From sequence record NC_017972.1: a stretch of DNA of 64,000 bases. One strand, written 5' to 3'. The translations under genes were made by a program, and so were the position numbers. The notes under the pieces were generated by a model. The model had not been told where the DNA came from and did no database searches. It saw nothing but the letters and a program-made list of their open reading frames with translations. Within the stretch, counting starts at the first letter, position 1. Each line of letters begins with the position of its first letter. Of this stretch, positions 5,288-59,105 are shown in pieces.

Positions 5288-5503
5288 TTACTTGTTGAAT
5301 TTCTGCCGGATTTTCTGAGCGAGAATACCCAGCCCGGAATGGGCAACATACGCAAACTCGGCGGCACTGAGCACAAAGCCCAGCAGCACCATGACTGCGA
5401 AATCGCCAGCGCCCGACCGACTGTGCTGCCATGCGTATTTAAACGCGGAGTAAATCCACATGGACAGGACAACCAGCAGGAAAAGAGCAAGAATACGCAT
5501 CAC
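5288..5503 (-). CDS. small two-TM membrane protein
   Basis: Two hydrophobic segments; start overlaps stop of the ATP-grasp gene. Confidence 0.7.
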   Translation of the reverse strand: MMRILALFLLVVLSMWIYSAFKYAWQHSRSGAGDFAVMVLLGFVLSAAEFAYVAHSGLGILAQKIRQKFNK

Positions 5504-6888
5504 AGATATTCCTCTTCATCGTCATCTTCGTCTTCGATATCGTCGATCAGAATGTGTGGAATGAACCGCTCATTTTTCCACGACAAAGTAGGCGATTCAA
5601 ATTCACGAATGCACAGCGTAGCGGCAGTGGATTCGCGCATGGTGACGTAGTTGGTCGAAACATCCGGCACCATAAACATGCCGATGATGAAATTGTTGCG
5701 GCCCGGAACTTGGAACGGCGGCGCGTACATTTGATAAACTACGTCGTCACCATCGTATGCGCCATCGGTCGAATAATTATGCGAACCGTCAGCATTGAAA
5801 ATGGTGATGTTGTTCGACATGCGTCCGATTTTTGGCTTGCTTACGAATTTCTCGCCAACTTGCAGGAAGCGCTGGTTGTTGAGGTAGGTCGGCAGCACCG
5901 GAACGTTTTCATAACGAAGCCGGAAATCTTCGTCGGTTTCGATCAGGTGGGTGATGAATGCCCAAATGCCTTTGTTCGACGCAAACCAGCGCCATGCAGG
6001 CTCAAGGAAGGTAACGTGTTGGCCCCAGTTCGTCCATTCCTTGAATGCGTGCGGCGCAACTTTCACCATCGATTCAATCATTTCTTCCCACGGCAGCAGG
6101 GCGAAAATAACCGACGCCGGGGTATCGCCAATCACAAACGGATTGGAGCGGTTGGTGAAGTCGTAATCCATTTCGGTAATGTCGGCGAACATACATTCGT
6201 TTTCTTCACCGAGAATTTGCTGGATAACTTCACTGGTCGCCACGTCTTCAAACGTGTTGTGGTCACAGATTACGGCGGCGGTGCCGGGGATAGCGCCCAT
6301 GTTGCGGATCAGTTCTTGTAGCGTCGGATAGAAACTATTCAACTGCAAGAAATTGTCGCCGGTCAGCGTTTCGCAAATCATGTTTTGCTGCGAAACAGCT
6401 TCAAACAGCATGGTCGGCGTATCGCCGTTGAATTCGTAGATGCCTTCGACTTGATTGGTGTCAGGATTCAGCGTGGCGTCGAAGCGGCCATAAATTGCTT
6501 GGCGGGCACTTCCAACATCGCGGTAAGTGAAGCGGGCATAGTCGAGGAAATACGGGTGGCGGCGCAGGAAAGCGCAACCCATATATTTCATGACTTCTGC
6601 ATCAGGAAGCGCGAACAATTTGCCGACAGCTTCGACCAGCATTGCGTAAGCATTCTCGAATGTGGTTTCGATTTCTGCACACGCGGAAAGCGGCAGTTCG
6701 TAGACCGGCATATTGCGCGAATTTTTGAGGGTAAAATCGAAATAATCATGCACGTCTTTGTAGAACGCTGCGTCGCACGCGGCTTGGCTTTGGCCGGGAG
6801 CTTGGCGGTAGAAGGCCTGCGTATACGGCAGTTCTTCGTTCATCATTTTGTTCAGATCGAAATTGATATCGTAGTGCGTGCAGTGCAT
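5500..6888 (-). CDS. glutathionylspermidine-synthase-family ATP-grasp ligase (YgiC/YjfC-like)
   Basis: YGRFD, EFNGDTPTMLFEA, EPAW..ASNK, KPKIGR motifs match the GspS synthetase domain. Confidence 0.9.
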   Translation of the reverse strand: MHCTHYDINFDLNKMMNEELPYTQAFYRQAPGQSQAACDAAFYKDVHDYFDFTLKNSRNMPVYELPLSACAEIETTFENAYAMLVEAVGKLFALPDAEVMKYMGCAFLRRHPYFLDYARFTYRDVGSARQAIYGRFDATLNPDTNQVEGIYEFNGDTPTMLFEAVSQQNMICETLTGDNFLQLNSFYPTLQELIRNMGAIPGTAAVICDHNTFEDVATSEVIQQILGEENECMFADITEMDYDFTNRSNPFVIGDTPASVIFALLPWEEMIESMVKVAPHAFKEWTNWGQHVTFLEPAWRWFASNKGIWAFITHLIETDEDFRLRYENVPVLPTYLNNQRFLQVGEKFVSKPKIGRMSNNITIFNADGSHNYSTDGAYDGDDVVYQMYAPPFQVPGRNNFIIGMFMVPDVSTNYVTMRESTAATLCIREFESPTLSWKNERFIPHILIDDIEDEDDDEEEYL

Positions 6889-42726: not shown

Positions 42727-43070
42727 GGCGACACGCGCCAGTATTCCAAACTACTGCGCAGCTTTTTCATGTCGTTTTCACTAACGCCACGCGATTCTGC
42801 CAGTTGGAAAATTTCTTCACGCACTTGATCGACCAGATTGCAGCGCGCTTTGTACTCAGGATTCCATTTGCATTCACTGACCAAACCGACCTTCATAAAG
42901 TTCGGAGTGAATTCGTATTTCGCACCACAGGAAAACTCAACGGATTCGTTCCAGTGACCGTTGCAGTGTTTGCCCCAGCGGCGAGTTTCCTTTACGTCGG
43001 ATTTGCCGCACTTCGGGCAGCAAGTTACTTCGGAAATGCGGTTGATACCAATCTGATAGTTAGGCTGCAC
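42720..43070 (-). CDS. Zn-finger-like protein
   Basis: CPKC...HCNG....FSCG. Confidence 0.7.
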   Translation of the reverse strand: MQPNYQIGINRISEVTCCPKCGKSDVKETRRWGKHCNGHWNESVEFSCGAKYEFTPNFMKVGLVSECKWNPEYKARCNLVDQVREEIFQLAESRGVSENDMKKLRSSLEYWRVSPW

Positions 43071-43329
43071 GTTTCTTCTTTCCTTGTACCTTGGTTATGA
43101 AGTGGGCGCGTTCATCATCGCTCCACCTTTCGGTAATCATCCCACAGCATTTGGCGATTTGCCCATTGCCTAAACCGGGGAATAATTTCAGAAGTTCATC
43201 CTTGATAAACTCTGCTTTGGATTTCGGGTAACGGCGAACCAGATTGACGATGCAGCGCACCACGTCGAAGTCGTCATGATCAATGTCAAACGGTTCGTCT
43301 TCTTCCGCTTTTTTCTTCGCCATACCCAC
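43060..43329 (-). CDS. hypothetical protein (89 aa)
   Basis: ORF track; GAGGTG upstream. Confidence 0.7.
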   Translation of the reverse strand: MGMAKKKAEEDEPFDIDHDDFDVVRCIVNLVRRYPKSKAEFIKDELLKLFPGLGNGQIAKCCGMITERWSDDERAHFITKVQGKKKRAA

Positions 43330-43336
43330 CTCGGTA

Positions 43337-43358
43337 GGAGGGGACCGAAATCCCCTCC
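43337..43358 (-). other. intergenic UUCG stem-loop
   Basis: GGAGGGGAT-TTCG-GTCCCCTCC after the LemA-like stop. Confidence 0.6.
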
Positions 43359-43366
43359 AACTCTAA

Positions 43367-43963
43367 TCAGTTTTTCTTGGCGCCGGGCAGATCGTACAGG
43401 CCTTGGTCTTGGCCGGTTTCAAACGACAGTTTTGCTTTGTCGTTCATCAGCGGCGCGTACTTGTCGAGGCCATCATTACAGCCGATTGCCAGCTTGGCCG
43501 AACCCATGATACCGATCACAATGTTATTCGGGAAAGTACCGCGATAGGTACAGGCAGCAGTTTTGCGGTCGGTCATCATGTTTTCTTGAACCAAAAACTT
43601 CTCACGGCCTTGGTCAATCAGGTTGATGATTTTCTCAGCCAGCGCCTGCGAAGGTGCAATGTTGTTTTCTTGCAGGAACAGCATGGTCGCTTTCAGACCG
43701 CCATCACCGGCACGGGTAGCGATTTGTTCGTTAACCGTTTTGCGGATGTTTTCAACGTTCATGTCTTGAACGCCAATTGCTTCTTTGATTTTCTGGCTGA
43801 TGTTGGACAGGGTAGCTTGACGCGCTTTGTTCGCGCCTACGATACCCGCTTCCTGCCGAACCACGTTGTTGTTGATCGACGCGCCCCACACAACCAGCAG
43901 GACTACGATGCCTAGTGCAACCAGACCAATGACGCCAGCGCTACCACGTTGCTTCGATTTCAT
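43367..43963 (-). CDS. LemA-like membrane-anchored helical protein
   Basis: N-terminal TM, NNNVVRQEAGI, LQENN, IDQGREKF, FPNNIV pattern. Confidence 0.68.
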   Translation of the reverse strand: MKSKQRGSAGVIGLVALGIVVLLVVWGASINNNVVRQEAGIVGANKARQATLSNISQKIKEAIGVQDMNVENIRKTVNEQIATRAGDGGLKATMLFLQENNIAPSQALAEKIINLIDQGREKFLVQENMMTDRKTAACTYRGTFPNNIVIGIMGSAKLAIGCNDGLDKYAPLMNDKAKLSFETGQDQGLYDLPGAKKN

Positions 43964-44203
43964 TTACTGCTTTTCCTTTTGAGGATCAAAGTTCCAGTTT
44001 GTGTTGACGCCGCACCAGTGCAGCGCCGATATTACTTCGCGTTGTTTCTTGCAGGTGTCGAAATACATTTTGAAGCAGCTAGGCATTTCTTTCACACGTA
44101 CAAAATCCACCGCGAATCCTTCTGCCAAGTGATAGATAATGTCGTTCATGTTCGGAACGACATACCCGCGATACACGTCCTTTCGGATGCGTACCTTAAT
44201 CAC
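43964..44203 (-). CDS. hypothetical protein (79 aa)
   Basis: ORF track; preceded by motif copy 7. Confidence 0.65.
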   Translation of the reverse strand: MIKVRIRKDVYRGYVVPNMNDIIYHLAEGFAVDFVRVKEMPSCFKMYFDTCKKQREVISALHWCGVNTNWNFDPQKEKQ

Positions 44204-45255
44204 CAGTATGCCCGCCGTCTGCTAAACAAACGGTAGCGGTCGCTCATATTATTTACAGTTAACGTCATGCCGATAACGATCAGCGCAACGATCAGAATAT
44301 CCAGCCACAAAGGCGGCGCGTATTCAGCTTCAAGGAAGTCGTATTTGCGCAGGTCTTCCCGGTAGAACAGAGGCAACGCACCATTGAGAACGTTTACGAC
44401 TTTTTCCGGGCTGTATTCGCCCAGCGCTTTCGACTCTTCCAGCAGACGCTGGGTAAACGACCGGCCCTTTTCGTCGGTAGCGTTATCGGACGAACGCCCG
44501 AACACACGCACGTCGTCAACTTTGTTTTCGTTGTCGAGTTTCAGAATCAAAACAGCATCGTTTTTCTTGCCGCCCTGCCATTTGGTGTAAAGCGCTTCTT
44601 TGAACGACGCAATGTCAGTGCCGCTGTTCAGAATTACCACAATTGCGTTTACGCCATACGACGGTCCCCAACTGCGGTGGGCAATGCTCAGCGCTTTCGA
44701 CAATTCGCGCTGGTCTACGGAGTCCACCAGCGAGAACGCCCGCGCCACTTTGAAACCGCCGTAGATTGCCGGGTAAGGAGGCAACCAACCTTTGTATTCC
44801 AGTTCGCGATTGAACTTCACCGTCTGACTAGAAACACGCTGGTAATTCTTGAAGGTTCGCGTATCGGAATACGGATCACCAATGTGCGTAGCGGCATAGA
44901 TTTCCGGCTCACGGTTTTTGTTATAGGTGTAATCGCTATAACTATCCCCGATGTTGGAAATAACATCCCAACGCCAGCGCGGAATTTCCCGCGTGCAATA
45001 CTTTGCGTTGCCATGCGAGTCGTGGCCGCAAATGTAGGTTTCGATTTCCGCATCATACACACGCTGTTTCTTGACGACGGCACCGCTAATCAGTTCGGTA
45101 TCGTTTGCAGAAACTGCGAGCGGAACGTAGTAACCAGCCAAGGCAATTACTGCGCCCAAAACAGCAGCGTAAAGCGTTGGTTCCGGGTCGCGAAACTTGG
45201 CGTACAAAATCCCAAGCAACAACACGACCACAAACAGGTAAATGAAAAGTGACAT
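44200..45255 (-). CDS. membrane protein with TPM-like periplasmic domain
   Basis: Two N-terminal TMs and one C-terminal TM; YGVNAIVVIL...KWQGGKKNDAVLIL resembles the TPM core; next to a LemA-like gene. Confidence 0.62.
   Translation of the reverse strand: MSLFIYLFVVVLLLGILYAKFRDPEPTLYAAVLGAVIALAGYYVPLAVSANDTELISGAVVKKQRVYDAEIETYICGHDSHGNAKYCTREIPRWRWDVISNIGDSYSDYTYNKNREPEIYAATHIGDPYSDTRTFKNYQRVSSQTVKFNRELEYKGWLPPYPAIYGGFKVARAFSLVDSVDQRELSKALSIAHRSWGPSYGVNAIVVILNSGTDIASFKEALYTKWQGGKKNDAVLILKLDNENKVDDVRVFGRSSDNATDEKGRSFTQRLLEESKALGEYSPEKVVNVLNGALPLFYREDLRKYDFLEAEYAPPLWLDILIVALIVIGMTLTVNNMSDRYRLFSRRRAYW
44250..44260 (-). promoter_or_regulatory. AACTGTAAATA motif copy 7
   Basis: Exact copy in the 3' end of the TPM-like gene, 47 nt upstream of ATG 44203. 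Confidence 0.5.
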
Positions 45256-45263
45256 GGCGGTCC

Positions 45264-45503
45264 TTAGCAGCTACGGCTAGTCAGTTTGTTTTTCGCTTCG
45301 TCCCACGGCACAACACCGGCGCTGATGTTTTGCGGATCGCGCACGACCAGCTCATAGCGGAAACCGTGTTTGCTATCACCGTAACCAGCAACCAGCCTGC
45401 CGCACTGGCAATTCATCCAGCGGAACGGAAAGCCTGCGCTATGGAGCGCGTAAGCGATATGGATTTTATCGTTCGTCGTCAGCAGACCGTTATCCTCAGT
45501 CAT
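45264..45503 (-). CDS. hypothetical protein (79 aa)
   Basis: ORF track. Confidence 0.65.
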   Translation of the reverse strand: MTEDNGLLTTNDKIHIAYALHSAGFPFRWMNCQCGRLVAGYGDSKHGFRYELVVRDPQNISAGVVPWDEAKNKLTSRSC

Positions 45504-45918
45504 AGTGACGATCCTTGACGAATTTGTACATGTCGGCGAACGATTTGAAATGATCTACCGAGTAATCGGGAATTTCCATTTCAAACTCTTCTTCGAGGGC
45601 CAGAACCATTTCGATTCGGTCCAGATCGTCTACGCCTGTATCCTCAAACGATTCGGCCATATTCTCATGCGTGATTTCTTCACCGAGAATATTTTGCACG
45701 GCGCTGAAAAAGCGACCGGCAAAAGAATGCTTATCGCCGTAGTCGATGTGGGCGCAAGCTTGCGTGCGCGGCAGCTCAGGCGCCGGGGCAGGTTCGGCAT
45801 CAGGCAGCACGCCGGTAATTTGCTCGACAGCAGCAAACAGGGTTTTCAGCTTGTGTACTACGAGCGGACTGCTAGCCATCGCAGTCAGCACGGCACGTTG
45901 TTCATTTTGAGTCAGCAT
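45496..45918 (-). CDS. acyl-carrier-protein-like protein lacking the Ppant Ser (Ser to Asp)
   Basis: ESFEDTGVDDLDRIEMVLALEEEFEMEIPD versus AcpP [30 protein letters not shown]; codon GAT checked in the DNA. Confidence 0.85.
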   Translation of the reverse strand: MLTQNEQRAVLTAMASSPLVVHKLKTLFAAVEQITGVLPDAEPAPAPELPRTQACAHIDYGDKHSFAGRFFSAVQNILGEEITHENMAESFEDTGVDDLDRIEMVLALEEEFEMEIPDYSVDHFKSFADMYKFVKDRHYD

Positions 45919-46168
45919 TGTTTTCCACTCCGTACAGCAGGGTTTGTCGTGCGAGTTGGTACGCACTATCAATCGGCGCAGGCGGAACATTTGGGAAATA
46001 TTGCACCGCTTGCAGGTACTCGACGATCATAGCCTCGGCTTTTTGGTCGTCCGCTTCGTAAAACAGCTCGGTCCAAACGCCTTTGATATAATCGCTCACA
46101 AAAGCTTGACCTAAGCGCTCGCTTGGGCGGTTTGCTTTCGTCCGCTTTTTCCACTCTTCAAAAGTCAT
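45902..46168 (-). CDS. hypothetical protein (88 aa)
   Basis: RLGQAF...ELFYEADD motif. Confidence 0.7.
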   Translation of the reverse strand: MTFEEWKKRTKANRPSERLGQAFVSDYIKGVWTELFYEADDQKAEAMIVEYLQAVQYFPNVPPAPIDSAYQLARQTLLYGVENNADSK

Positions 46169-46425
46169 CGCATCAGCTTCCGAACAAGGTAGGAATTGCG
46201 GGCGTAACCAATCACGCGACAGCCCGCATGAATGTGCCCAACTTTTCCGTAGCCGCGATGGGTTTTGAAATCCGGTCGCCCGCTACGCCCATACCAAAAA
46301 CCAGAGAACAAATACATGCCCGGTTTCAACACGTCCACACGGCGCATATCCCGCTTCGTTACCGGCAGCGCAATGTAGTGTTTGCGCCATTTGCTGGTAG
46401 TGCGAACAATGGCAAACTTTTTCAT
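46165..46425 (-). CDS. basic hypothetical protein (86 aa)
   Basis: ORF track. Confidence 0.65.
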   Translation of the reverse strand: MKKFAIVRTTSKWRKHYIALPVTKRDMRRVDVLKPGMYLFSGFWYGRSGRPDFKTHRGYGKVGHIHAGCRVIGYARNSYLVRKLMR

Positions 46426-46790
46426 AGCGGCTCCGCTGGAATTGGATTGCGGCGAACGAAACCAAAACTCAAAACGTAGCGCGTACCGGCAACCACAGGC
46501 GACACGCTATGCAAGTGCAGGTCCGGGCGGAACAGCGTGAAAAAGCGATTGGTGAAAATCGCATCGTGGTGCTCCGGTACGCCACCAGATTTCGCGTTCC
46601 ACAAATACACGTTTAACCGGTAGTGCCGGTGGTCTGGCACAGGATCACAATGCAGGGGAATGCCAGCGCCAACCGGGTAGCGCAGAAGGTACAAATCCCA
46701 CTTGAAACGGCTGAAAAACTTCCAGCGATTAAACAGCTTTAGTTTTTCGTAGCCGGTGCCTTGTCGGCCCGCTTCCCATTTGAGTCCCAC
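46422..46790 (-). CDS. 2OG-Fe(II) oxygenase, minimal
   Basis: LLRYPVGAGIPLHCD (HxD), LHSVSPV (distal His), GTRYVLSF (2OG-binding Arg). Confidence 0.85.
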   Translation of the reverse strand: MGLKWEAGRQGTGYEKLKLFNRWKFFSRFKWDLYLLRYPVGAGIPLHCDPVPDHRHYRLNVYLWNAKSGGVPEHHDAIFTNRFFTLFRPDLHLHSVSPVVAGTRYVLSFGFVRRNPIPAEPL

Positions 46791-46793
46791 GAT

Positions 46794-47030
46794 TCACTTC
46801 CAGAAAAACTTGGCCGGGTAACGACGGTCGGTTTTGCGCTGGGCTTCCATTGCGTAAAACAGACGGGTCAGGTCGGAGGCAGCGTGTGGCGCGTAGCGCA
46901 TCATACGGTCGCGCACAGCGCTTTCGACAGGGCCATTCGTGTGGCCGTGGCCGTCAAACAGAACGTCAAGATTTGCACCTTCGCGAAGCATACCGCGCTG
47001 GTCAAAGAATGCGTCAAGATTGAAATCCAT
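46794..47030 (-). CDS. hypothetical protein (78 aa)
   Basis: ORF track. Confidence 0.65.
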   Translation of the reverse strand: MDFNLDAFFDQRGMLREGANLDVLFDGHGHTNGPVESAVRDRMMRYAPHAASDLTRLFYAMEAQRKTDRRYPAKFFWK

Positions 47031-47062
47031 TTTTTTATCCTCAGTCTACCGTCATAAAAGAC

Positions 47063-47085
47063 GCACGTTTTTGAACAGAACGTGC
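47063..47085 (-). terminator. probable intrinsic terminator
   Basis: GCACGTT...AACGTGC stem followed by GTCTTTTAT, after the 136-aa gene. Confidence 0.55.
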
Positions 47086-47100
47086 AAACTGTTTTACTCG

Positions 47101-47511
47101 TTACAGCGCGTCGCGCATTTTCTTGAGTTCAGCAGGCGACAGCTTTTTCAGCTCTTCGTCTTCTGCCTGCTCGATCAAACGATCCAGATGCTCACGCTTG
47201 GCTTGCTTGCTGTTTTCAGCAGCCGCCGCGTCAGCCTCGGCTTGGCGAACATCGATGATGTGTTTGACGATATCGAATTTCAGTTGCAGGATTTCGTCTT
47301 TCTTTTTGGTTTTCACGAAGCTGGTAACGCCCTGCGCTTCGATTTGCTGGTACAGGTCCAGCGCGATTGCGTCGAGATTCGGCTTGTCCGCAACCTTGCT
47401 GGTCAGCGGCAGCTCCCACAGGTTTTCCACGGTCATCAGGCCACGGGAAGTTTCGTAACGCAGTTTAGCGCGGGAAGCTTGCTCGAAAATGTTTGCGGTT
47501 TGTGCAGTCAT
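47101..47511 (-). CDS. helical hypothetical protein paired with the 703-aa gene
   Basis: FEQASRAKLRYETSRG..VENLWELPL...LKFDIVKHII. Confidence 0.8.
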   Translation of the reverse strand: MTAQTANIFEQASRAKLRYETSRGLMTVENLWELPLTSKVADKPNLDAIALDLYQQIEAQGVTSFVKTKKKDEILQLKFDIVKHIIDVRQAEADAAAAENSKQAKREHLDRLIEQAEDEELKKLSPAELKKMRDAL

Positions 47512-47543
47512 GGTGTTTTCCTTTTTACGATTTGATTTGGTGA

Positions 47544-49655
47544 TTAGAACTTGATGTTGAGGATGCGGCTCATGGAACCTTTCACCCGCACTTGCATTTC
47601 GTGACGCTGGCCGACCGAGAAGCCAAGGCCGCTCAATTGGTTTTCGCTGTACGGCGCACGCATTTGCGAAGCAACTACTTCAAACACTTTGCGATGTTGG
47701 TGCAGATCATCACGCAGGAATTCGTTGTAGAAACCACGCGACGACTCTTCGTTTGCGCAGCCTTTCAGCATGAAGAAAACGTGCTCATGGCCGATCTTCT
47801 GATCATTCCAGAAATTCGGCGAGCGGGTAATCAGATCAACCGGCACCCACGATTCGGTCGAAATACCCCACTGCTCTTTGCTCACCGAGTTGCAAGGCAG
47901 GTGGTGCTCGATGCTGAATACGCCCTTTTTCAGGGTAACGGTTGCAACGTGTACCCATTCTTTGTTTTCCAGCGGACGGTCTACTTCGTACTCGAAAATC
48001 TGACCAGCAAATTCGATTTCCGCTTTGAAGCCACCGAGGGTCGGAGCGCGCAAATCCCAGTTGTGGATTTTGCATTCGTATTTGCCGTCTTTCAGCCTCG
48101 ACAAATCAGGGAACGTGATGTTTTCAACAGGCACGTAACCTTCTGGTGCGCGATCAACATAATCCACGTCTTGTACACCACCAGAAATGCGGTCGGTGCG
48201 GTTGTTCCAGCCTACACGCTGGCCGTGGCCGTATTGGTCATGCTTGCCGTTCTTGTGTTCGCAACCCGGCATGAATACGTGCAGGTCCATCAGCGAAGCA
48301 TTGCGTTTGCCGTAGTTCCAGCTATGCGAGAAACGCAGCACGCCGTCTACACGACCGCCCTTTTCTTGCACTGCGCGGCGAATATCGGAATCGGTCATGT
48401 CGCCGTAGTACGACCACGAAAAACCGTTATCCCATTTGAACAGCGGATTTGCATCAGGATGAACCGGCGCCAGCAGGCTCACCATTTGCGGCAGGTGAAC
48501 GTTTTTCACGAACGCTTCAACGGTATCGACTTTCGGCAGAACTTTCTTGATGAAATCCTGAATCGAAATGTCTTCGGCGTGGTCGAACTTCGGCACTTCT
48601 TTTTTGGTCGGCTTGATCGAATCGAACGCACCGCCCAGCAGTTGCTTTTTGACCGAACCGTCTACGAACAAAACGTCGTTTACGGAAATGTCTTCACGCA
48701 CAGCGTAACGGCGCGGCAACGCGGTTTCCAGTTCCAGTTTCTCGACAGTCTTTTGCGCTTCGTCAATCATTTTCTGAGTGACCAGAGCTTTCGGGCGCTT
48801 GTAGTTCGGGCCTGCGACAACAGCCTCGAATTTCTTCACTGCAATTTCCAGCTCTTCGCCGCCGGTAATGTCCAGCAGTAGAGTACCGATTGCTTTGGAG
48901 TGGATGCGAGTTTTCGGCGAGCAGTTCAGCCACAGGAAAATTTCGCGATCACGATCGGTTTTCAGCTTGTTGTATTTCTGTTTCAGCTTGATCAGCAGTT
49001 CGACCGAGTGGCGGAATTCAGCGCCTTTGTACAGCGAATCTTGGTCGATCAAATCGAGCACAATTTCCGCAGCAGCATCGCTGATTTCAGTAATCGAACG
49101 GCGCAGGCCGTTAACGTCGTCTTTTGCTTGGCCGACATAATCGGATTTGTTGTTGGCCCACTGGAAAATCTTCGGTACGTCACCGTGGAAGTGGTGCCAC
49201 GTTTCGCCGGTAATTTTGCTGGTGTTTTTCGCGCAGCCGTAGCTTGGCATTTCAACCACGAACGGATGGGAGATTGGCAGCAGCTTAACCAGCGCCGACA
49301 TGGAATCCGCGACGTGCTGATAAGTCGGGTCTTCGACTTCTACGTCCCACACGGTTTTAATACCGTCTTTGTCCATGTAAATCACGGCGCCGAGATTGCG
49401 CACGAAGTTGCGGCAGTTATCGCAATCGTACTCGGTACGCTCGCGGAACATTTTGTTGGTGCCTTCGGGGAACGAGGCAAGATAATGCGCCCACAGTTGG
49501 TCGCCGGTGCTCGGGCCGTCGATCACATCACCGTTTTCGTCGAGTGCATCAGGGAATTTCACAACGAAAACATTCTGCTTTTCGCCGCCGTCCTTTTGCA
49601 GGATGGTGTTGTAGGCGTTGGTTACTGCTTGGCCGAACTTAATGAAGTTGCTCAT
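47544..49655 (-). CDS. 703-aa multidomain protein with CxxC motif and C-terminal YfaP/TerD-like beta domain
   Basis: EYDCDNCRNF; LRFSHSW...SLMDLH...DVD...PVENI...GKYECKIHNW. Confidence 0.7.
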   Translation of the reverse strand: MSNFIKFGQAVTNAYNTILQKDGGEKQNVFVVKFPDALDENGDVIDGPSTGDQLWAHYLASFPEGTNKMFRERTEYDCDNCRNFVRNLGAVIYMDKDGIKTVWDVEVEDPTYQHVADSMSALVKLLPISHPFVVEMPSYGCAKNTSKITGETWHHFHGDVPKIFQWANNKSDYVGQAKDDVNGLRRSITEISDAAAEIVLDLIDQDSLYKGAEFRHSVELLIKLKQKYNKLKTDRDREIFLWLNCSPKTRIHSKAIGTLLLDITGGEELEIAVKKFEAVVAGPNYKRPKALVTQKMIDEAQKTVEKLELETALPRRYAVREDISVNDVLFVDGSVKKQLLGGAFDSIKPTKKEVPKFDHAEDISIQDFIKKVLPKVDTVEAFVKNVHLPQMVSLLAPVHPDANPLFKWDNGFSWSYYGDMTDSDIRRAVQEKGGRVDGVLRFSHSWNYGKRNASLMDLHVFMPGCEHKNGKHDQYGHGQRVGWNNRTDRISGGVQDVDYVDRAPEGYVPVENITFPDLSRLKDGKYECKIHNWDLRAPTLGGFKAEIEFAGQIFEYEVDRPLENKEWVHVATVTLKKGVFSIEHHLPCNSVSKEQWGISTESWVPVDLITRSPNFWNDQKIGHEHVFFMLKGCANEESSRGFYNEFLRDDLHQHRKVFEVVASQMRAPYSENQLSGLGFSVGQRHEMQVRVKGSMSRILNIKF

Positions 49656-49695
49656 TTACTACACTTCCTCTTTCGTCTTGGGGTGTTGCTTTTCG

Positions 49696-49962
49696 TTATT
49701 TGGCAGCGTCTATGAACGCGTCCAGAAGTTTTTGCGAGTCGGCAGGTTCCATGTCGAATATTTCGATTTCGTCAGTGGCTCGCCATTCTTGTTGCAGGTT
49801 GCCCCACGGGTCGATATACATGACCGCGTAGTCTTTACCGCTGCCCGGTGTTGCGGACGTTGAAAAATCTTGAACGATCAAACCGACAGCGTAGTACGAC
49901 ACGCCGTAGATAAGATTTGCTTCGTGCGTTTTATCACGAAAGCCTTGCAGCCTTTCGCACAT
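49696..49962 (-). CDS. hypothetical protein
   Basis: ATG at 49962 overlaps the upstream TGA. Confidence 0.65.
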   Translation of the reverse strand: MCERLQGFRDKTHEANLIYGVSYYAVGLIVQDFSTSATPGSGKDYAVMYIDPWGNLQQEWRATDEIEIFDMEPADSQKLLDAFIDAAK

Positions 49963-50321
49963 CACCGACGTGATTCCAAAAACGCCACTTCTTTCTGGAA
50001 CGCGTCCTGCCACAATTCGGCGCGGTCGTCTCCAACAAACGGGTTTTCGCCTACGTCGCGTTCGCCTTCCTGCGCCATCATTTTACCGAGCTGCGCTGGG
50101 CTGTATTCATCGAATTCATGCTCGCGAACATACAGCACGGAAATGGAAGCGTTACCGCGATGTTTGATTTCGTCCAGCACTGGCTGCGACAGCAGGCGCA
50201 GCGAAGGGCCGTATGCCCATACACAAACGCTGCCCTCAAAAATAACGCGGTCGCCGCTCACGTCTTCTGCGACTTTTACGGTCACGTCAAAACGGCGTTT
50301 GCATTTGGTGAAGTTCATCAT
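49962..50321 (-). CDS. hypothetical protein with C-terminal Rmf-like motif
   Basis: LGKMMAQEG....NPF....AELWQDAF resembles G..A...G...CPY...W..GW. Confidence 0.5.
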   Translation of the reverse strand: MMNFTKCKRRFDVTVKVAEDVSGDRVIFEGSVCVWAYGPSLRLLSQPVLDEIKHRGNASISVLYVREHEFDEYSPAQLGKMMAQEGERDVGENPFVGDDRAELWQDAFQKEVAFLESRR

Positions 50322-50335
50322 ACAACGTGTTTCCT

Positions 50336-51193
50336 TTAAAGGTGGGTAATACCCAATTGAATTTTGTAGTAGCCGGGCGAACCGTAGACACTATCTACGA
50401 TATCTGCATTTTGGAATTGCAGCAGACCGGCATTGTTGGTCAGTACCACGTCGCCGCTATTCAGCGCGAAGTAGGTAAGGGTTACGCCGTTTTCGTCTAC
50501 GACGGAATCAGGAAAATAAATGATTGCCCGATCCAGCGTCGATACAGCGCCCTTGCTGTCTTTAACATTTACAGTTAATGCGTAGGTGAAGCCACGGCGC
50601 CAAGTGGTACGCCTCGGGCTAAGCAAATGGCCCAACATGGAACGGCCATTCATGACCTTTGCCAGTGGCGTCGGGTTCTCTACCGCATCTTCCTGTTTCG
50701 GCTCTTCGACAGCCGGGCGCATGTCGATATATTGCATACGGAAAGTGAGATTGAAATGGTGCTTGCGCATTGCTTCGCTGCACTGCTCATTGAACTTCGC
50801 ATTATCGGCAGGCCAGATGGTTGCGATATCGCGAAACTTCGCAGGCGACAGCCGCAGAAACGGCGCGTCGGTTTCTTCAAAAATGGACACAAGGCGGTTG
50901 CAAATGTTGTCGATCAACGCAGGCCATTGAGACTCGTCCACGTTGGTGACAGGAAGGCGAGAAATAAAGACTGCCGATCCGATTTGAATTTTGTACCCGC
51001 GTTCGCGCATCGCATTGCGCAAATTGGTGCGGGTAGTTGTGTGCTTTAGCAGGCCCACATTATCCATATGAGAATCGACGGTAGAGGCGAGGGCGAGGCG
51101 GGACATACGCAGCCGCGATTTGCCAGCGGCTTCGTAGGTTTTGATCAGGTTGCTGGTGATGTTCAGAAGTTGTTGCGAATATTGCTGAGTCAT
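50336..51193 (-). CDS. hypothetical protein (285 aa)
   Basis: ORF track. Confidence 0.75.
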   Translation of the reverse strand: MTQQYSQQLLNITSNLIKTYEAAGKSRLRMSRLALASTVDSHMDNVGLLKHTTTRTNLRNAMRERGYKIQIGSAVFISRLPVTNVDESQWPALIDNICNRLVSIFEETDAPFLRLSPAKFRDIATIWPADNAKFNEQCSEAMRKHHFNLTFRMQYIDMRPAVEEPKQEDAVENPTPLAKVMNGRSMLGHLLSPRRTTWRRGFTYALTVNVKDSKGAVSTLDRAIIYFPDSVVDENGVTLTYFALNSGDVVLTNNAGLLQFQNADIVDSVYGSPGYYKIQLGITHL

Positions 51194-51225
51194 TTTCTTT
51201 TAATCTCGTCTTCCGTCGATTTTCG

Positions 51226-51666
51226 TCAGTTGCTTTCTTGCAGGTCGAGCGTTTCGTGCAGGCCGTCGATAAACGGGTTTTTGATTGCCCGCACTTGGCC
51301 CCAAGGTTTCAAACCAATGTCAGGCATTTCGCGTGCCTGCATATCCCAAAACCATTCATCCGCATGGCGTATCACAGCACCGAGGTTGCTGGCGACCATT
51401 GCGATATAGACCGGATACGTATCCCAGCCTTTGTAGAAATAGCATTTGAAAAACGCAATTACAGCAGCACCGCTATAGGCGCACATTTGCCAGCCGGTCG
51501 GCTCACCTTTCAGGCCTACCACATGAACCGGCGCATCCGGGCACATGGCTTGAATCAGCTCTTTACGCTCTTCGATGAATGGCGCGAAAGGCTGCGACCA
51601 ATCGGCGTAAAACTTCGCAGAATGAAACGAATGCTTTTCAGCAAACGATTCGTATGTAAGTGGCAT
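51226..51666 (-). CDS. hypothetical protein (146 aa)
   Basis: ORF track; AGGAGG RBS; preceded by motif copy 8. Confidence 0.78.
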   Translation of the reverse strand: MPLTYESFAEKHSFHSAKFYADWSQPFAPFIEERKELIQAMCPDAPVHVVGLKGEPTGWQMCAYSGAAVIAFFKCYFYKGWDTYPVYIAMVASNLGAVIRHADEWFWDMQAREMPDIGLKPWGQVRAIKNPFIDGLHETLDLQESN

Positions 51667-51691
51667 AACTCTTCCTCCTGTTCCTACATAC

Positions 51692-51702
51692 TATTTACAG
51701 TT
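51692..51702 (-). promoter_or_regulatory. AACTGTAAATA motif copy 8
   Basis: Exact intergenic copy 26 nt upstream of ATG 51666. Confidence 0.65.
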
Positions 51703-51710
51703 TCGCTAGA

Positions 51711-51740
51711 CTACGCACTCCCGTGCAGGCGAATGCGTAG
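51711..51740 (-). repeat. GCATTC/GAGTGC hairpin family, copy A
   Basis: CTACGCATTC-gcctgcacgg-GAGTGCGTAG. Confidence 0.6.
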
Positions 51741-51752
51741 ACGAACCAGCTG

Positions 51753-52082
51753 TTAGTAATACAACCAACCGTCACGCAGCGGACGGCGAATGCTCATATC
51801 GTCCCATTCATCGAACCGCAAATTGAGTTTGATTACCCGTTTGCAATAACGACGGAAAGGGCGGTCTTGCAAATGGGAACGGAACCAGCGAGGCAATGCG
51901 CCTTTGGTGCCCGTGCCCAAGTAGGAACGACCGTCGCTATGGAACCGCGCTTCGGTTTTTTCTTTGTACTGTTCGTAGGTCAATCCGGCGCTGAAACGCG
52001 ACCGCCACCATTCGTTGCTTTCTTCGCAAATGTAACGGTGACGGACACAGGCCAGATCGGTACGGCGGAAAGTACGGGACAT
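51753..52082 (-). CDS. basic hypothetical protein (MSRTFRR...)
   Basis: ORF track, start moved to MSRT after GGAG. Confidence 0.7.
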   Translation of the reverse strand: MSRTFRRTDLACVRHRYICEESNEWWRSRFSAGLTYEQYKEKTEARFHSDGRSYLGTGTKGALPRWFRSHLQDRPFRRYCKRVIKLNLRFDEWDDMSIRRPLRDGWLYY

Positions 52083-52142
52083 GCAGGAAACTCCAGTTTG
52101 AATTGGCTTAATGCCACTGGGTTTCCACATACTGGAAAAACA

Positions 52143-52412
52143 TTAGTTCTCCTTTGGACCGAACCACTTATTATGTACCCACGTTGCTAGCACGATTGAG
52201 CAAGCTGCCGATGTGCCAGAAACAAGTGAATACCACCAATCGCCTTGCATGAATATTTTTGCGTAGCTGCCAACGGCCAGCACTTCAAAAACGCCCATGA
52301 CGTAAGACGTAACGAACATCCCAATCCATTTGTTATGCACCACGTTTTTGTACTGAAAACCTTTGAGGAAAACAGCAACGAACGTGATGCAGAACGCAGT
52401 CACATACAGCAT
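52143..52412 (-). CDS. three-TM membrane protein, paralogue of 28753..29127
   Basis: FVAVFLKGFQYKNV...FEV...SG..A...WVHNK. Confidence 0.72.
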   Translation of the reverse strand: MLYVTAFCITFVAVFLKGFQYKNVVHNKWIGMFVTSYVMGVFEVLAVGSYAKIFMQGDWWYSLVSGTSAACSIVLATWVHNKWFGPKEN

Positions 52413-52609
52413 TCGATCTTGGGCCTTTGCTTGCGGAACGATTTAGCGGCTTTTGTCATGCGCTTAACGTTGTTATGCAGCACGACCGCTAAGTCGTTCG
52501 GTTCCCACGAAAAGCCAGTTATTGCGTCGAAGCTTTCGGTCACGGCATCGCGCTGCGCTTGCACAGCCATACCGCTAAAGCTAGACAGGTGATTTCTCAG
52601 TTTGTTCAT
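52400..52609 (-). CDS. hypothetical protein (69 aa)
   Basis: ORF track. Confidence 0.55.
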   Translation of the reverse strand: MNKLRNHLSSFSGMAVQAQRDAVTESFDAITGFSWEPNDLAVVLHNNVKRMTKAAKSFRKQRPKIECCM

Positions 52610-58379: not shown

Positions 58380-59105
58380 TTAAGCTTCGGGTTTTTCCGC
58401 TGGTTTTTCTACCGAGTCGCACCAGTACATCATGTCGTTCCACGTATGACGCAGCAGGTAGTAAACCGGCTCCACCATATCAGCAGGCGTTACCGATTGA
58501 ACGGCCTGCAAAAGCGTCAGGCGGTAAAACTGATTTGTATCGAAAATGCCGTACAGATATGCGTGCGGCGCGTTCGCTTCTCTTGCGGCTTCGGCTTCGG
58601 CCTCTTTCTCGATGCGCATTTGCTCGCACGCTTCTTTGTCGAAAGAGTTTTCATGCGCGGCAGCAGAGGCACGCACCCACGCGGCGAGCTGCGCAGCAAT
58701 AGCCGGGGATTTCATCAGCGGTTCTGGCGAGGTTTCGGTCGGCGCTACGGTTTCTTCTCCCAGTTCGTAAGCTTTTCTGAGTTCTTCTTTTTCAGCCTCG
58801 CTGGCAGGGCGCGTAACGCGGGTGACGGTCAGTTCCATCATTTGGTGCCAGTCAGGGTCAGCAACGGCCTTTTCGCAGTAGGCGATAATGTCACCAATGG
58901 TTTCCCATTCCTGCATCACGTCTTCGGGAATTTCGATGCAGAATTCGCCTTCCAGAATAAGGGTAATTTCGGCACGATCCGTTTCGTCGGCAAGCACGGA
59001 TTCCAACGAAGAGGCGACAAAGATATGCTCGCGCATTTCGTCCGTCACGGTGCAGATGGTGTCGAAAACCTGATTGGCGAGTTTTTTGATAGTGATAGTT
59101 GGCAT
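58380..59105 (-). CDS. N-terminal ACP-like domain lacking the Ppant Ser (Ser to Glu), fused to an unknown helical domain
   Basis: SSLESVLADETDRAEITLILEGEFCIEIPEDVMQEWETIGDIIAYC; codon GAA checked in the DNA. Confidence 0.78.
   Translation of the reverse strand: MPTITIKKLANQVFDTICTVTDEMREHIFVASSLESVLADETDRAEITLILEGEFCIEIPEDVMQEWETIGDIIAYCEKAVADPDWHQMMELTVTRVTRPASEAEKEELRKAYELGEETVAPTETSPEPLMKSPAIAAQLAAWVRASAAAHENSFDKEACEQMRIEKEAEAEAAREANAPHAYLYGIFDTNQFYRLTLLQAVQSVTPADMVEPVYYLLRHTWNDMMYWCDSVEKPAEKPEA

Follow-up and report, generated by a model that had tools for sequence, protein, structure and literature searches.

The 64,000-nucleotide stretch analyzed here (sequence record NC_017972.1; the whole stretch is hereafter called the window) is the right end of the genome of the Pseudomonas putida jumbo phage Lu11 (280.5 kb; JQ768459), at record positions 216539-280538; the 4 kb surrounding the gene described below match Lu11 with 100% identity. 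Within a long, tightly packed and co-directional run of minus-strand genes lies Lu11_0346, which GenBank labels 'hypothetical protein'. Our analysis indicates that it is a genuine gene, kept by selection, for a two-module protein with the fold of the bacterial acyl carrier protein (ACP) AcpP, in which the serine that carries 4'-phosphopantetheine is replaced by an acidic residue. The start is an ATG at position 45918, with GGAG 9 nucleotides upstream of it, and the N-terminal start MLT[QR]NEQ is common to all Lu11_0346 orthologues. The features of the gene are the following.

45496..45918, minus strand: coding sequence Lu11_0346 (AFH14884.1), 140 residues plus stop; predicted two-module, Ser-less ACP-like protein (open reading frame and GenBank annotation)
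45739..45918, minus strand: N-terminal module, residues 1-60; predicted helices 4-15 and 18-35 and an Ala/Pro-rich linker at about 36-60
45499..45738, minus strand: AcpP-type ACP-like domain, residues 61-140 (Pfam, NCBIfam, AlphaFold2, Foldseek)
45583..45627, minus strand: predicted helix II ('recognition helix'), residues 98-112, DLDRIEMVLALEEEF (AlphaFold2 model and orthologue alignment)
45625..45627, minus strand: codon GAT of Asp98, at the position of the phosphopantetheine-attachment Ser (translation GVDDLDR; phmmer pairing with DSLD of solved ACPs)

ACP identity and fold of the C-terminal domain

The C-terminal 80 or so residues had been described in the original prediction, made from the nucleotide sequence alone, as resembling AcpP, and this likeness was recovered with profiles as well as with single sequences. 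The Pfam PP-binding family (PF00550) matched residues 86-134 with 25.7 bits against a gathering score of 20.8 (E 1.4e-5), and the PHROG 5934 'acyl carrier protein' profile matched residues 80-136 (E 5.4e-12, 46.7 bits). The best NCBIfam matches were all AcpP-type models of fatty acid synthesis ACPs (E 8e-12 to 3e-10), while the score remained below the cut-off of every AcpP equivalog or subfamily model (43.7 versus 70.45 bits for TIGR00517). By these scores, Lu11_0346 would be a domain-level member of PF00550 and not an AcpP equivalog. In a phmmer search against PDB sequences more than 100 ACPs were matched (best E ~1e-8), with 'GVDDLD' of the phage protein paired with 'G(A/L)DSLD'.

The structure prediction agrees with this assignment. 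Using a 71-row alignment of orthologues and viral ACP domains as input, AlphaFold2 modeled residues 61-140 with a predicted local distance difference test (pLDDT) score of 83-92 and helices at 66-81, 98-112, 118-123 and 127-138; a single-sequence run gave a pLDDT of 43 and was set aside. When the model was compared with the PDB by Foldseek, ACPs made up all of the top 50 matches, with a root-mean-square deviation (rmsd) of 1.5-2.0 A and a target template-modeling (TM) score of 0.73-0.83. The best match was holo-AcpP of P. putida KT2440, a strain of the host species (7pdi; 38% identity, rmsd 2.0 A, target TM 0.73). The ACP fold, on which the original prediction depended, was thus found in the model, and Lu11_0346 is predicted to adopt the four-helix arrangement, in which helix II is the recognition helix. 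As had been proposed, this helix is retained, and so is the EEEF.EIPD motif. Residues 95-118 (GVDDLDRIEMVLALEEEFEMEIPD) are identical to E. coli AcpP 33-56 at 16 of 24 positions in a local alignment, and the remaining differences are mainly conservative, apart from Ser to Asp and Thr to Arg.

The domain is also as acidic as AcpP, with a net charge of about -14 and an isoelectric point of 4.35. Such a charge on 80 residues would suit a general acidic nucleic-acid mimic of the Ocr/gp5.9 type, blocking a DNA-binding host defence or repair protein. Phages do use acidic DNA mimics, one of which is reported to inhibit the AcpP-containing MukBEF complex (PMC7617805). The charge, however, is the same as in any AcpP, and conservation tracks the ACP pattern (helix II, EEEF.EIPD) instead of a DNA-like charge array. 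Moreover, Lu11_0346 shows no likeness to known anti-defence proteins or to PADLOC families, and we regard nucleic-acid mimicry as very improbable.

Loss of the phosphopantetheine serine

In the AlphaFold2 model, Asp98 is the first residue of helix II. The reading of the original prediction, in which the invariant Ser36 of AcpP is replaced by Asp (GAT), was correct, with the codon at 45625-45627 on the minus strand and GVDDLD lying on G(A/L)DSLD. The codon is GAT in four of the five sequences available (Lu11 and three orthologues) and GAA (Glu) in the fifth, so that close homologues carry an acidic residue instead of Ser. A sequencing error or a recent loss of Ser was ruled out, as the same state is found in four other independent assemblies and no Ser codon can turn into GAT by fewer than two base changes.

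Phosphopantetheinyl transferases (PPTases) modify the Ser of a D-S-L motif at the start of helix II. From established ACP biochemistry it follows that, lacking the attachment Ser, Lu11_0346 would receive no 4'-phosphopantetheine, could not become holo-ACP and would carry no acyl group. The proposal of a non-loadable ACP look-alike therefore stands, on the grounds of an ACP fold without the attachment Ser, an acidic residue in every orthologue found and purifying selection (see below). The serine is what defines an ACP functionally; for a protein without it, 'Ser-less ACP-like protein' would be a more accurate annotation than acyl carrier protein, a label that should be avoided.

The proposal that the Asp is phosphomimetic fared less clearly. 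An acidic residue in 5/5 sequences makes it a possible reading. Nevertheless, an acidic side chain is structurally favorable at the first residue of a helix, and Asp or Glu at the start of helix II would suit helix stability equally. The acidic preference at the Ser position is therefore open to phosphodiester mimicry as one reading and does not prove it.

Genes for carrier enzymology were searched for around Lu11_0346 and throughout the window. The ten flanking genes gave no match to fatty acid synthesis (FAS), polyketide synthase (PKS) or PPTase families in Pfam and PHROG, and a Pfam scan of 119 minus-strand open reading frames (ORFs) over the 64-kb window revealed no FAS, PKS, non-ribosomal peptide synthetase or PPTase gene. 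The claim that no fatty-acid, PKS or PPTase genes lie nearby thus holds for the ten neighbors as well as for the 119 ORFs. All matches of that scan were NUDIX (2), GNAT (2), GSP_synth, Phage_g100, NADAR, DUF7740, RlaP and the PP-binding match of Lu11_0346 itself. Low-sensitivity tblastn searches of all phages with E. coli AcpS and B. subtilis Sfp as queries found no AcpS-like or Sfp-like gene in Lu11 or in the related Pseudomonas phage HRDY3.

These results also bear on whether Lu11_0346 could still be a carrier, loaded at another residue or through an unconventional modification of Asp or Glu. Ser90, in the loop ahead of helix II, would be the candidate residue, and nothing supports it directly. 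PPTases act on the Ser of the D-S-L motif at the beginning of helix II, Ser90 is Thr in one orthologue, and neither a PPTase or acyl-handling gene in the window (Pfam) nor a PPTase in Lu11 (tblastn) was detected. We find this explanation hardly credible.

Among the other window genes, Lu11_0281, annotated as 'metal-dependent phosphohydrolase', was considered as an AcpH-like enzyme and dropped, as it gave only a generic HD-domain match at threshold and no AcpH family match. Further auxiliary-looking genes in the window, besides the HD-domain gene Lu11_0281, encode a glutathionylspermidine synthase-like protein (Lu11_0271, 5503-6888, minus strand; GSP_synth, E 4e-37), a NADAR protein, two NUDIX hydrolases, two GNAT acetyltransferases and an RlaP-type nucleotidyltransferase.

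Orthologues and selection

Three full-length orthologues of Lu11_0346 (68-93% identity) and one truncated by its contig were found, from four independent metagenome assemblies. A word-indexed search of 5.8 billion proteins returned three orthologues besides Lu11_0346 itself, an exhaustive HMMER search of 1.84 billion representative proteins added one further, partial orthologue, and IMG/VR together with a phage collection contained no close match except Lu11 itself. Judged by these searches, the orthologous family is narrow.

The ORF is intact in all five independent sequences, at synonymous divergence (dS) of up to ~0.6. The ratio of non-synonymous to synonymous divergence (dN/dS, Nei-Gojobori) is 0.21-0.36 for the whole gene and 0.21-0.28 for the ACP domain over the same range of dS, and the ACP-like domain is clearly under purifying selection. 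Constraint is unevenly distributed along it. From Thr94 to Met130, a segment that takes in helix II and the following loop as well as helix III and the beginning of helix IV, only 3/37 positions vary among the five sequences, the Asp/Glu site being one of the three, whereas 9/32 vary in the helix I region; apart from Asp98/Glu, helix II is invariant in all five. The canonical partner-binding face (helix II/III) is therefore the most constrained part of the domain.

Phage-encoded ACPs that keep the serine

Among sequenced phages, the nearest to Lu11 is Pseudomonas phage HRDY3 (313 kb), which has homologues of Lu11_0351, 0350, 0349, 0348, 0345, 0344 and 0342 in the same order. Between its homologues of 0348 and 0345, a position syntenic with Lu11_0347/0346, our analysis revealed two adjacent, overlapping ACP genes.

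HRDY3 L003 5208-6177 (PQ015379 300916-301885): syntenic ACP pair XDJ15383 (236 residues, long N-terminal extension) and XDJ15384 (90 residues)

Both HRDY3 proteins keep the serine of the DSL motif (HMDSLDH and GGDSLDM). Their identity with Lu11_0346 is 41% and 45%, over its last 44-55 residues. No homologue of Lu11_0347 was detectable beside these Ser-bearing ACPs.

A scan of IMG/VR with a degenerate pattern that leaves out the serine position yielded 121 viral ACP-like matches, of which 80 loci were retrieved. Ser is present in 77 of the 80; the exceptions are Lu11 (Asp) and two contigs unrelated to it, L020 and L047 (both Glu). Since the syntenic HRDY3 ACPs and 77/80 viral loci keep Ser, Lu11_0346 is a rare, derived variant within the known phage-encoded ACPs. 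When the neighbors of 79 viral ACP-like loci were clustered, no acyl-handling enzymes were found, and the recurrent neighbors, judged from sequence starts only, were genes of the usual replication and structural kinds (ribonucleotide reductase-like, SbcCD-like and others), so that gene context offers no clue to function here.

Outside this set, the ACP domains in the 150 best representatives of the HMMER search had 151 Ser, 11 Asp, 7 Glu and 6 other residues at the attachment position, counts that are slightly biased by the Asp carried by the query itself. Asp or Glu thus replaces Ser in ~10% of the ACP domains most similar to Lu11_0346 in this 1.8-billion-protein library, and it appears that an acidic residue is the usual replacement when Ser is lost. 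In a FastTree phylogeny of 174 ACP domains, built from few columns, 10 changes to Asp/Glu were placed on the tree, only one of them forced by well-supported branches.

P0060, P0066, P0067, P0072, P0093, P0100, P0101, P0123, P0131, P0134, P0135 and P0087; L020 5950-6186 and L047 5842-6156: small DDLD/DELD ACP-like proteins from metagenomes and IMG/VR

Of these, P0060 (135 residues) is the closest to Lu11_0346 in the tree among the non-orthologues, and it too is extended at the N-terminus. No neighbors shared with Lu11 were found on the contigs with other Asp/Glu ACP-likes (L011-L016, L020, L047), which are short or have unrelated neighbors; some of these contigs are phage-like and one looks bacterial.

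The derived state raises the question of decay, i.e. that Lu11_0346 is the remnant of a phage ACP auxiliary gene with an HRDY3-like, Ser-bearing ancestor and has little or no present function. The Ser in both syntenic HRDY3 ACPs and in 77/80 viral loci, a dN/dS somewhat above that of the neighboring genes, and scores under the NCBIfam equivalog cut-offs are all in line with such a history. However, an ORF intact in five independent sequences at dS up to ~0.6, with dN/dS of only 0.2-0.3, is not what decay predicts. In addition, helix II/III is almost unchanged, and the sole change at the key position is Asp to Glu, by which the charge is kept. A decaying remnant is accordingly an improbable explanation.

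A second Ser-less ACP-like domain in Lu11

A search of viral fold predictions (BFVD) with the Lu11_0346 model returned I1TR29, a protein of 241 residues (rmsd 1.7 A over 77 columns), which was equated with Lu11_0371 by its length.

58380..59105, minus strand: Lu11_0371 (241 residues); Ser-less ACP-like domain at residues ~1-85 and an unrelated 156-residue C-terminal domain, function unassigned
58983-58985, minus strand: codon of Glu41, at the Ser position of Lu11_0371 (LADETDR; translation, motif LADETDRAEITLILEGEFCIEIPED)

An hhalign comparison of the ACP profile with Lu11_0371 gave 95% probability (E 2.9e-8), and NCBIfam AcpP models match it at E 7e-7. Its HRDY3 homologue (XDJ15349) shares the C-terminal domain only and has a different N-terminus. 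Lu11 thus carries two Ser-less, acidic-substituted ACP-like modules on different partner sequences, and as they are joined to different partners, the second domain suggests reuse of the ACP fold as a binding module rather than random decay. The original prediction did not include this domain, the Ser-bearing ACP pair of HRDY3, or the N-terminal module of Lu11_0346 with its Ala/Pro linker. No match to PADLOC defence families was obtained for Lu11_0346, Lu11_0371, their neighbors or the HRDY3 ACPs.

N-terminal module, mosaicism and neighboring genes

The N-terminal module of Lu11_0346 has no Pfam match. Its helices, predicted to form a hairpin (residues 1-35), were modeled with pLDDT 65-70 and the linker (…LPDAEPAPAPELPRTQ…) with pLDDT ~50. 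The string 'KLK.LFAAVEQ(I/L)TGVLP' is unchanged across the four full-length orthologous proteins, although the module as a whole evolves faster than the ACP domain and has a 19-residue insertion in one orthologue.

A comparison between Lu11 and the phage contig L007 (window 45496-46425 versus L007 3104-4039) separates the two modules. The ACP domains differ by 0 synonymous and 1 non-synonymous changes, whereas the N-terminal modules differ by 10.5 synonymous and 11.5 non-synonymous ones. dS exceeds 1 for 0347 and 0348 (dN 0.5 for 0348), while it is 0-0.02 for the ACP domain and for genes 0349 and 0351, which are near-identical. A near-identical ACP domain next to a diverged N-terminal module therefore points to a recombination breakpoint at the linker inside Lu11_0346, and this breakpoint supports two separable modules.

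The immediate neighbors of Lu11_0346 overlap it on both sides.

45902..46168, minus strand: Lu11_0347, upstream gene, 88 residues, function unassigned; its 3' end overlaps the Lu11_0346 start by 17 nucleotides
45264..45503, minus strand: Lu11_0345, downstream gene, 79 residues, Cys-rich, function unassigned; its ATG overlaps the Lu11_0346 stop (ATGACTGA, 8 nucleotides)

Lu11_0347 has no Pfam match, and Lu11_0345, whose HRDY3 homologue (XDJ15388) is 38% identical, has no family match in Pfam, PHROG or NCBIfam. The order 88 residues - ACP-like - 79 residues - 351 residues is shared by all relatives wherever the contig is long enough, and its first three genes are present in this order in L004, L006, L007 and L009. 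The 351-residue protein is Lu11_0344 (44200-45255, minus strand), two genes downstream of Lu11_0346, with hydrophobic segments near both its N- and C-terminus and a weak, sub-threshold TPM-domain-like match (E 3.6e-3); it is very strongly conserved among Lu11-like phages (dN/dS 0.01-0.07) and 48% identical to its HRDY3 homologue. The most conserved gene of the neighborhood is Lu11_0349 (46422-46790, minus strand; 122 residues), which belongs to PHROG 13746 (function unassigned) and shows 88% identity with HRDY3 XDJ15377; its match to 2OG-Fe(II) oxygenases is weak and also sub-threshold (E 1.3e-3). The GenBank record places 'putative middle/late promoters' ahead of the gene cluster with Lu11_0346, and a virion structural gene (PHROG 1383) is close by. 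A promoter and terminator scan of 43000-52500 gave the same counts as shuffled sequence and did not define the transcription unit.

The arrangement of the locus bears on a reading in which Lu11_0346 is a structural or adaptor subunit of a phage-encoded complex. Its Ser-less fold would then dock phage proteins, e.g. Lu11_0347, Lu11_0345 or a virion or assembly component, and host enzymes would not be inhibited. The start/stop overlaps with both neighbors, suggestive of translational coupling, the three-gene order strictly kept in all relatives, and the annotated middle/late promoters beside a virion structural protein all agree with it. An anchor, a flexible linker and a small domain form the layout of tethered swinging domains, and the helical anchor, Ala/Pro linker and small domain of Lu11_0346 repeat that layout in its classic form. 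Furthermore, in Lu11_0371 the second ACP-like domain forms a single polypeptide with a further phage domain. Mitochondrial ACP, which is a subunit of complex I, offers a likeness from cells. As a precedent, the mitochondrial ACP (mACP) of Plasmodium stabilizes Isd11-Nfs1 (PMC8547962). On the other hand, the neighbors match no recognizable family, Lu11_0347 has no detectable homologue beside the Ser-bearing ACPs of HRDY3, and an AcpP-like helix II is equally expected for binding to a host protein. We consider an adaptor role unlikely, yet a serious contender.

Proposed function

The reading that we tentatively prefer, at somewhat less than an even chance, is that Lu11_0346 is a hard-wired apo-AcpP mimic that occupies an ACP site of the host. 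As a permanently unloaded copy of AcpP, it would have no other activity than to bind proteins with its canonical acidic helix II/III face, and in infected cells it would take up a site at which a host protein docks ACP. The N-terminal module may serve as a tether or as a second binding site. The target would be of the kind that binds ACP without need of the pantetheine arm; the glycerol-3-phosphate acyltransferase step, the PcpS transferase or an SMC-type ATPase are possible examples. A function as host-enzyme decoy would be plausible, and the feature of the protein that supports it is the retained acidic helix II/III face.

AcpP is among the most connected bacterial proteins, serving fatty-acid, phospholipid, lipid A, biotin and lipoate synthesis and moonlighting with SpoT, MukB and IscS. 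As it is also among the most abundant proteins of the cell, a specific high-affinity target would be more likely than general competition with AcpP. Several published observations lend plausibility to a decoy action. In E. coli, apo-ACP inhibits glycerol-3-phosphate acyltransferase more strongly than holo-ACP does, and growth stops (reviewed in PMC3896788). MukB is activated equally by apo- and holo-AcpP (PMC8602292), and some ACP partners therefore need no pantetheine arm. A Ser-less ACP that acts by binding alone is known from Plasmodium (PMC8547962).

Three of the host targets named in the original prediction, however, now appear ill-suited. SpoT is a poor fit, as apo-ACP has been reported not to interact with it (PMC3896788). 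MukB fits Pseudomonas poorly, as MukBEF is described as enterobacterial and Pseudomonas has Smc-ScpAB and MksBEF instead (bioRxiv 10.1101/2020.05.18.101659). The same holds for AcpS, since it is PcpS that loads ACPs as the PPTase of Pseudomonas (PMC5686131).

A number of points weigh against the host-mimic reading. All that we say beyond the inability of the protein to be loaded, we infer. Competition with a very abundant host AcpP demands high expression or a much higher affinity. The gene lies in a co-directional cluster behind the annotated 'putative middle/late promoters' and near a virion structural gene, a setting untypical for an early host-takeover gene. Its dN/dS of 0.2-0.3 is higher than that of most neighboring genes (0.01-0.2). 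The conservation of helix II is general to ACPs and may partly reflect folding constraint instead of a specific host partner, and Asp or Glu at the start of helix II may have been favored because it stabilizes the helix, not because it mimics the phosphodiester.

A wider and more speculative form of the apo-mimic reading, which we hold to be rather doubtful, is that Asp/Glu stands in for phosphoserine, that hard-wired apo mimics shut down or redirect a host enzyme or an ACP-licensed machine, and that the module is reused for targeting on Lu11_0371. The site in question would be PcpS, as the only PPTase, the phospholipid acyltransferase step, the acyltransferases of lipid A, or else a defence complex or SMC-type ATPase. 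If this were true, Lu11_0346 would be without precedent as a viral mimic of a carrier protein and would point to a larger class, so far overlooked, of phage and bacterial ACP-like proteins with Asp/Glu in place of Ser.

A virus-borne, non-loadable copy of AcpP with a preserved binding face would serve as a natural probe of the ACP interactions that matter in infection and might represent a new way to take over the host or to counter its defences; inhibitors of ACP-dependent enzymes, whether peptides or proteins, could be modeled on it. If Lu11_0346 is a relic or a purely structural subunit, the gain is a modest one of annotation, from 'hypothetical protein' to 'Ser-less ACP-like protein'.

Comparison with known systems

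A literature search with a limited tool returned no paper on a phage Ser-less ACP, nor on a phage protein that targets or mimics AcpP. Ser-less ACPs have been reported before essentially only from apicomplexan mitochondria (PMC8547962). Because ~10% of the nearest ACP domains carry Asp or Glu and one phage has two such domains, binding-only ACP folds may be commoner than appreciated.

With bacterial AcpP (7pdi; E. coli AcpP), Lu11_0346 shares the predicted four-helix fold, AcpP models as its best NCBIfam matches, a largely identical helix II and EEEF.EIPD, and the negative charge. It differs from AcpP in the Asp/Glu at Ser36, the 60-residue N-terminal extension with its Pro/Ala linker and a shorter loop between helices I and II, as well as in being phage-encoded, without FAS context and below the AcpP equivalog cut-offs. 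The phage ACPs (PHROG 5934 and 4154; XDJ15383/XDJ15384 of HRDY3 and g153 of Yersinia phage fHe-Yen9-04) belong to the same family, are syntenic in the case of HRDY3, and some are N-terminally extended. The known phage ACPs, however, keep the DSL serine, and the 41-45% identity of those of HRDY3 is confined to the last 44-55 residues.

Among small, very acidic and helical phage proteins, Ocr and T7 gp5.9 are alike in that they occupy a site meant for a host macromolecule. They mimic DNA and have unrelated folds, whereas Lu11_0346 would mimic a protein cofactor carrier.

The mACP of Plasmodium falciparum combines an ACP fold with loss of the conserved Ser; its role, which is essential, consists in binding alone, and the residue in place of Ser lies at the interface and matters for function (Falekun et al., 2021, PMC8547962). 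Lu11_0346 likewise has a predicted ACP fold without Ser that is kept by selection, as dN/dS and the fold model indicate. In mACP, however, a hydrophobic residue (Phe113) takes the place of Ser and docks into Isd11, an LYR protein, while in Lu11_0346 the replacement is acidic; furthermore, mACP works in an organelle that lost type II fatty acid synthesis, and Lu11_0346 is encoded by a virus. The inhibition caused by excess apo-ACP in E. coli, in which an ACP without prosthetic group inhibits an ACP-using enzyme, is the model for the decoy reading (PMC3896788). The inhibitor there is the overproduced protein of the host itself, whereas here the apo state would be phage-borne and genetically hard-wired. 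By analogy, it appears that Lu11_0346 would work most like apo-ACP or like the phosphopantetheine-independent mitochondrial ACP of apicomplexans.

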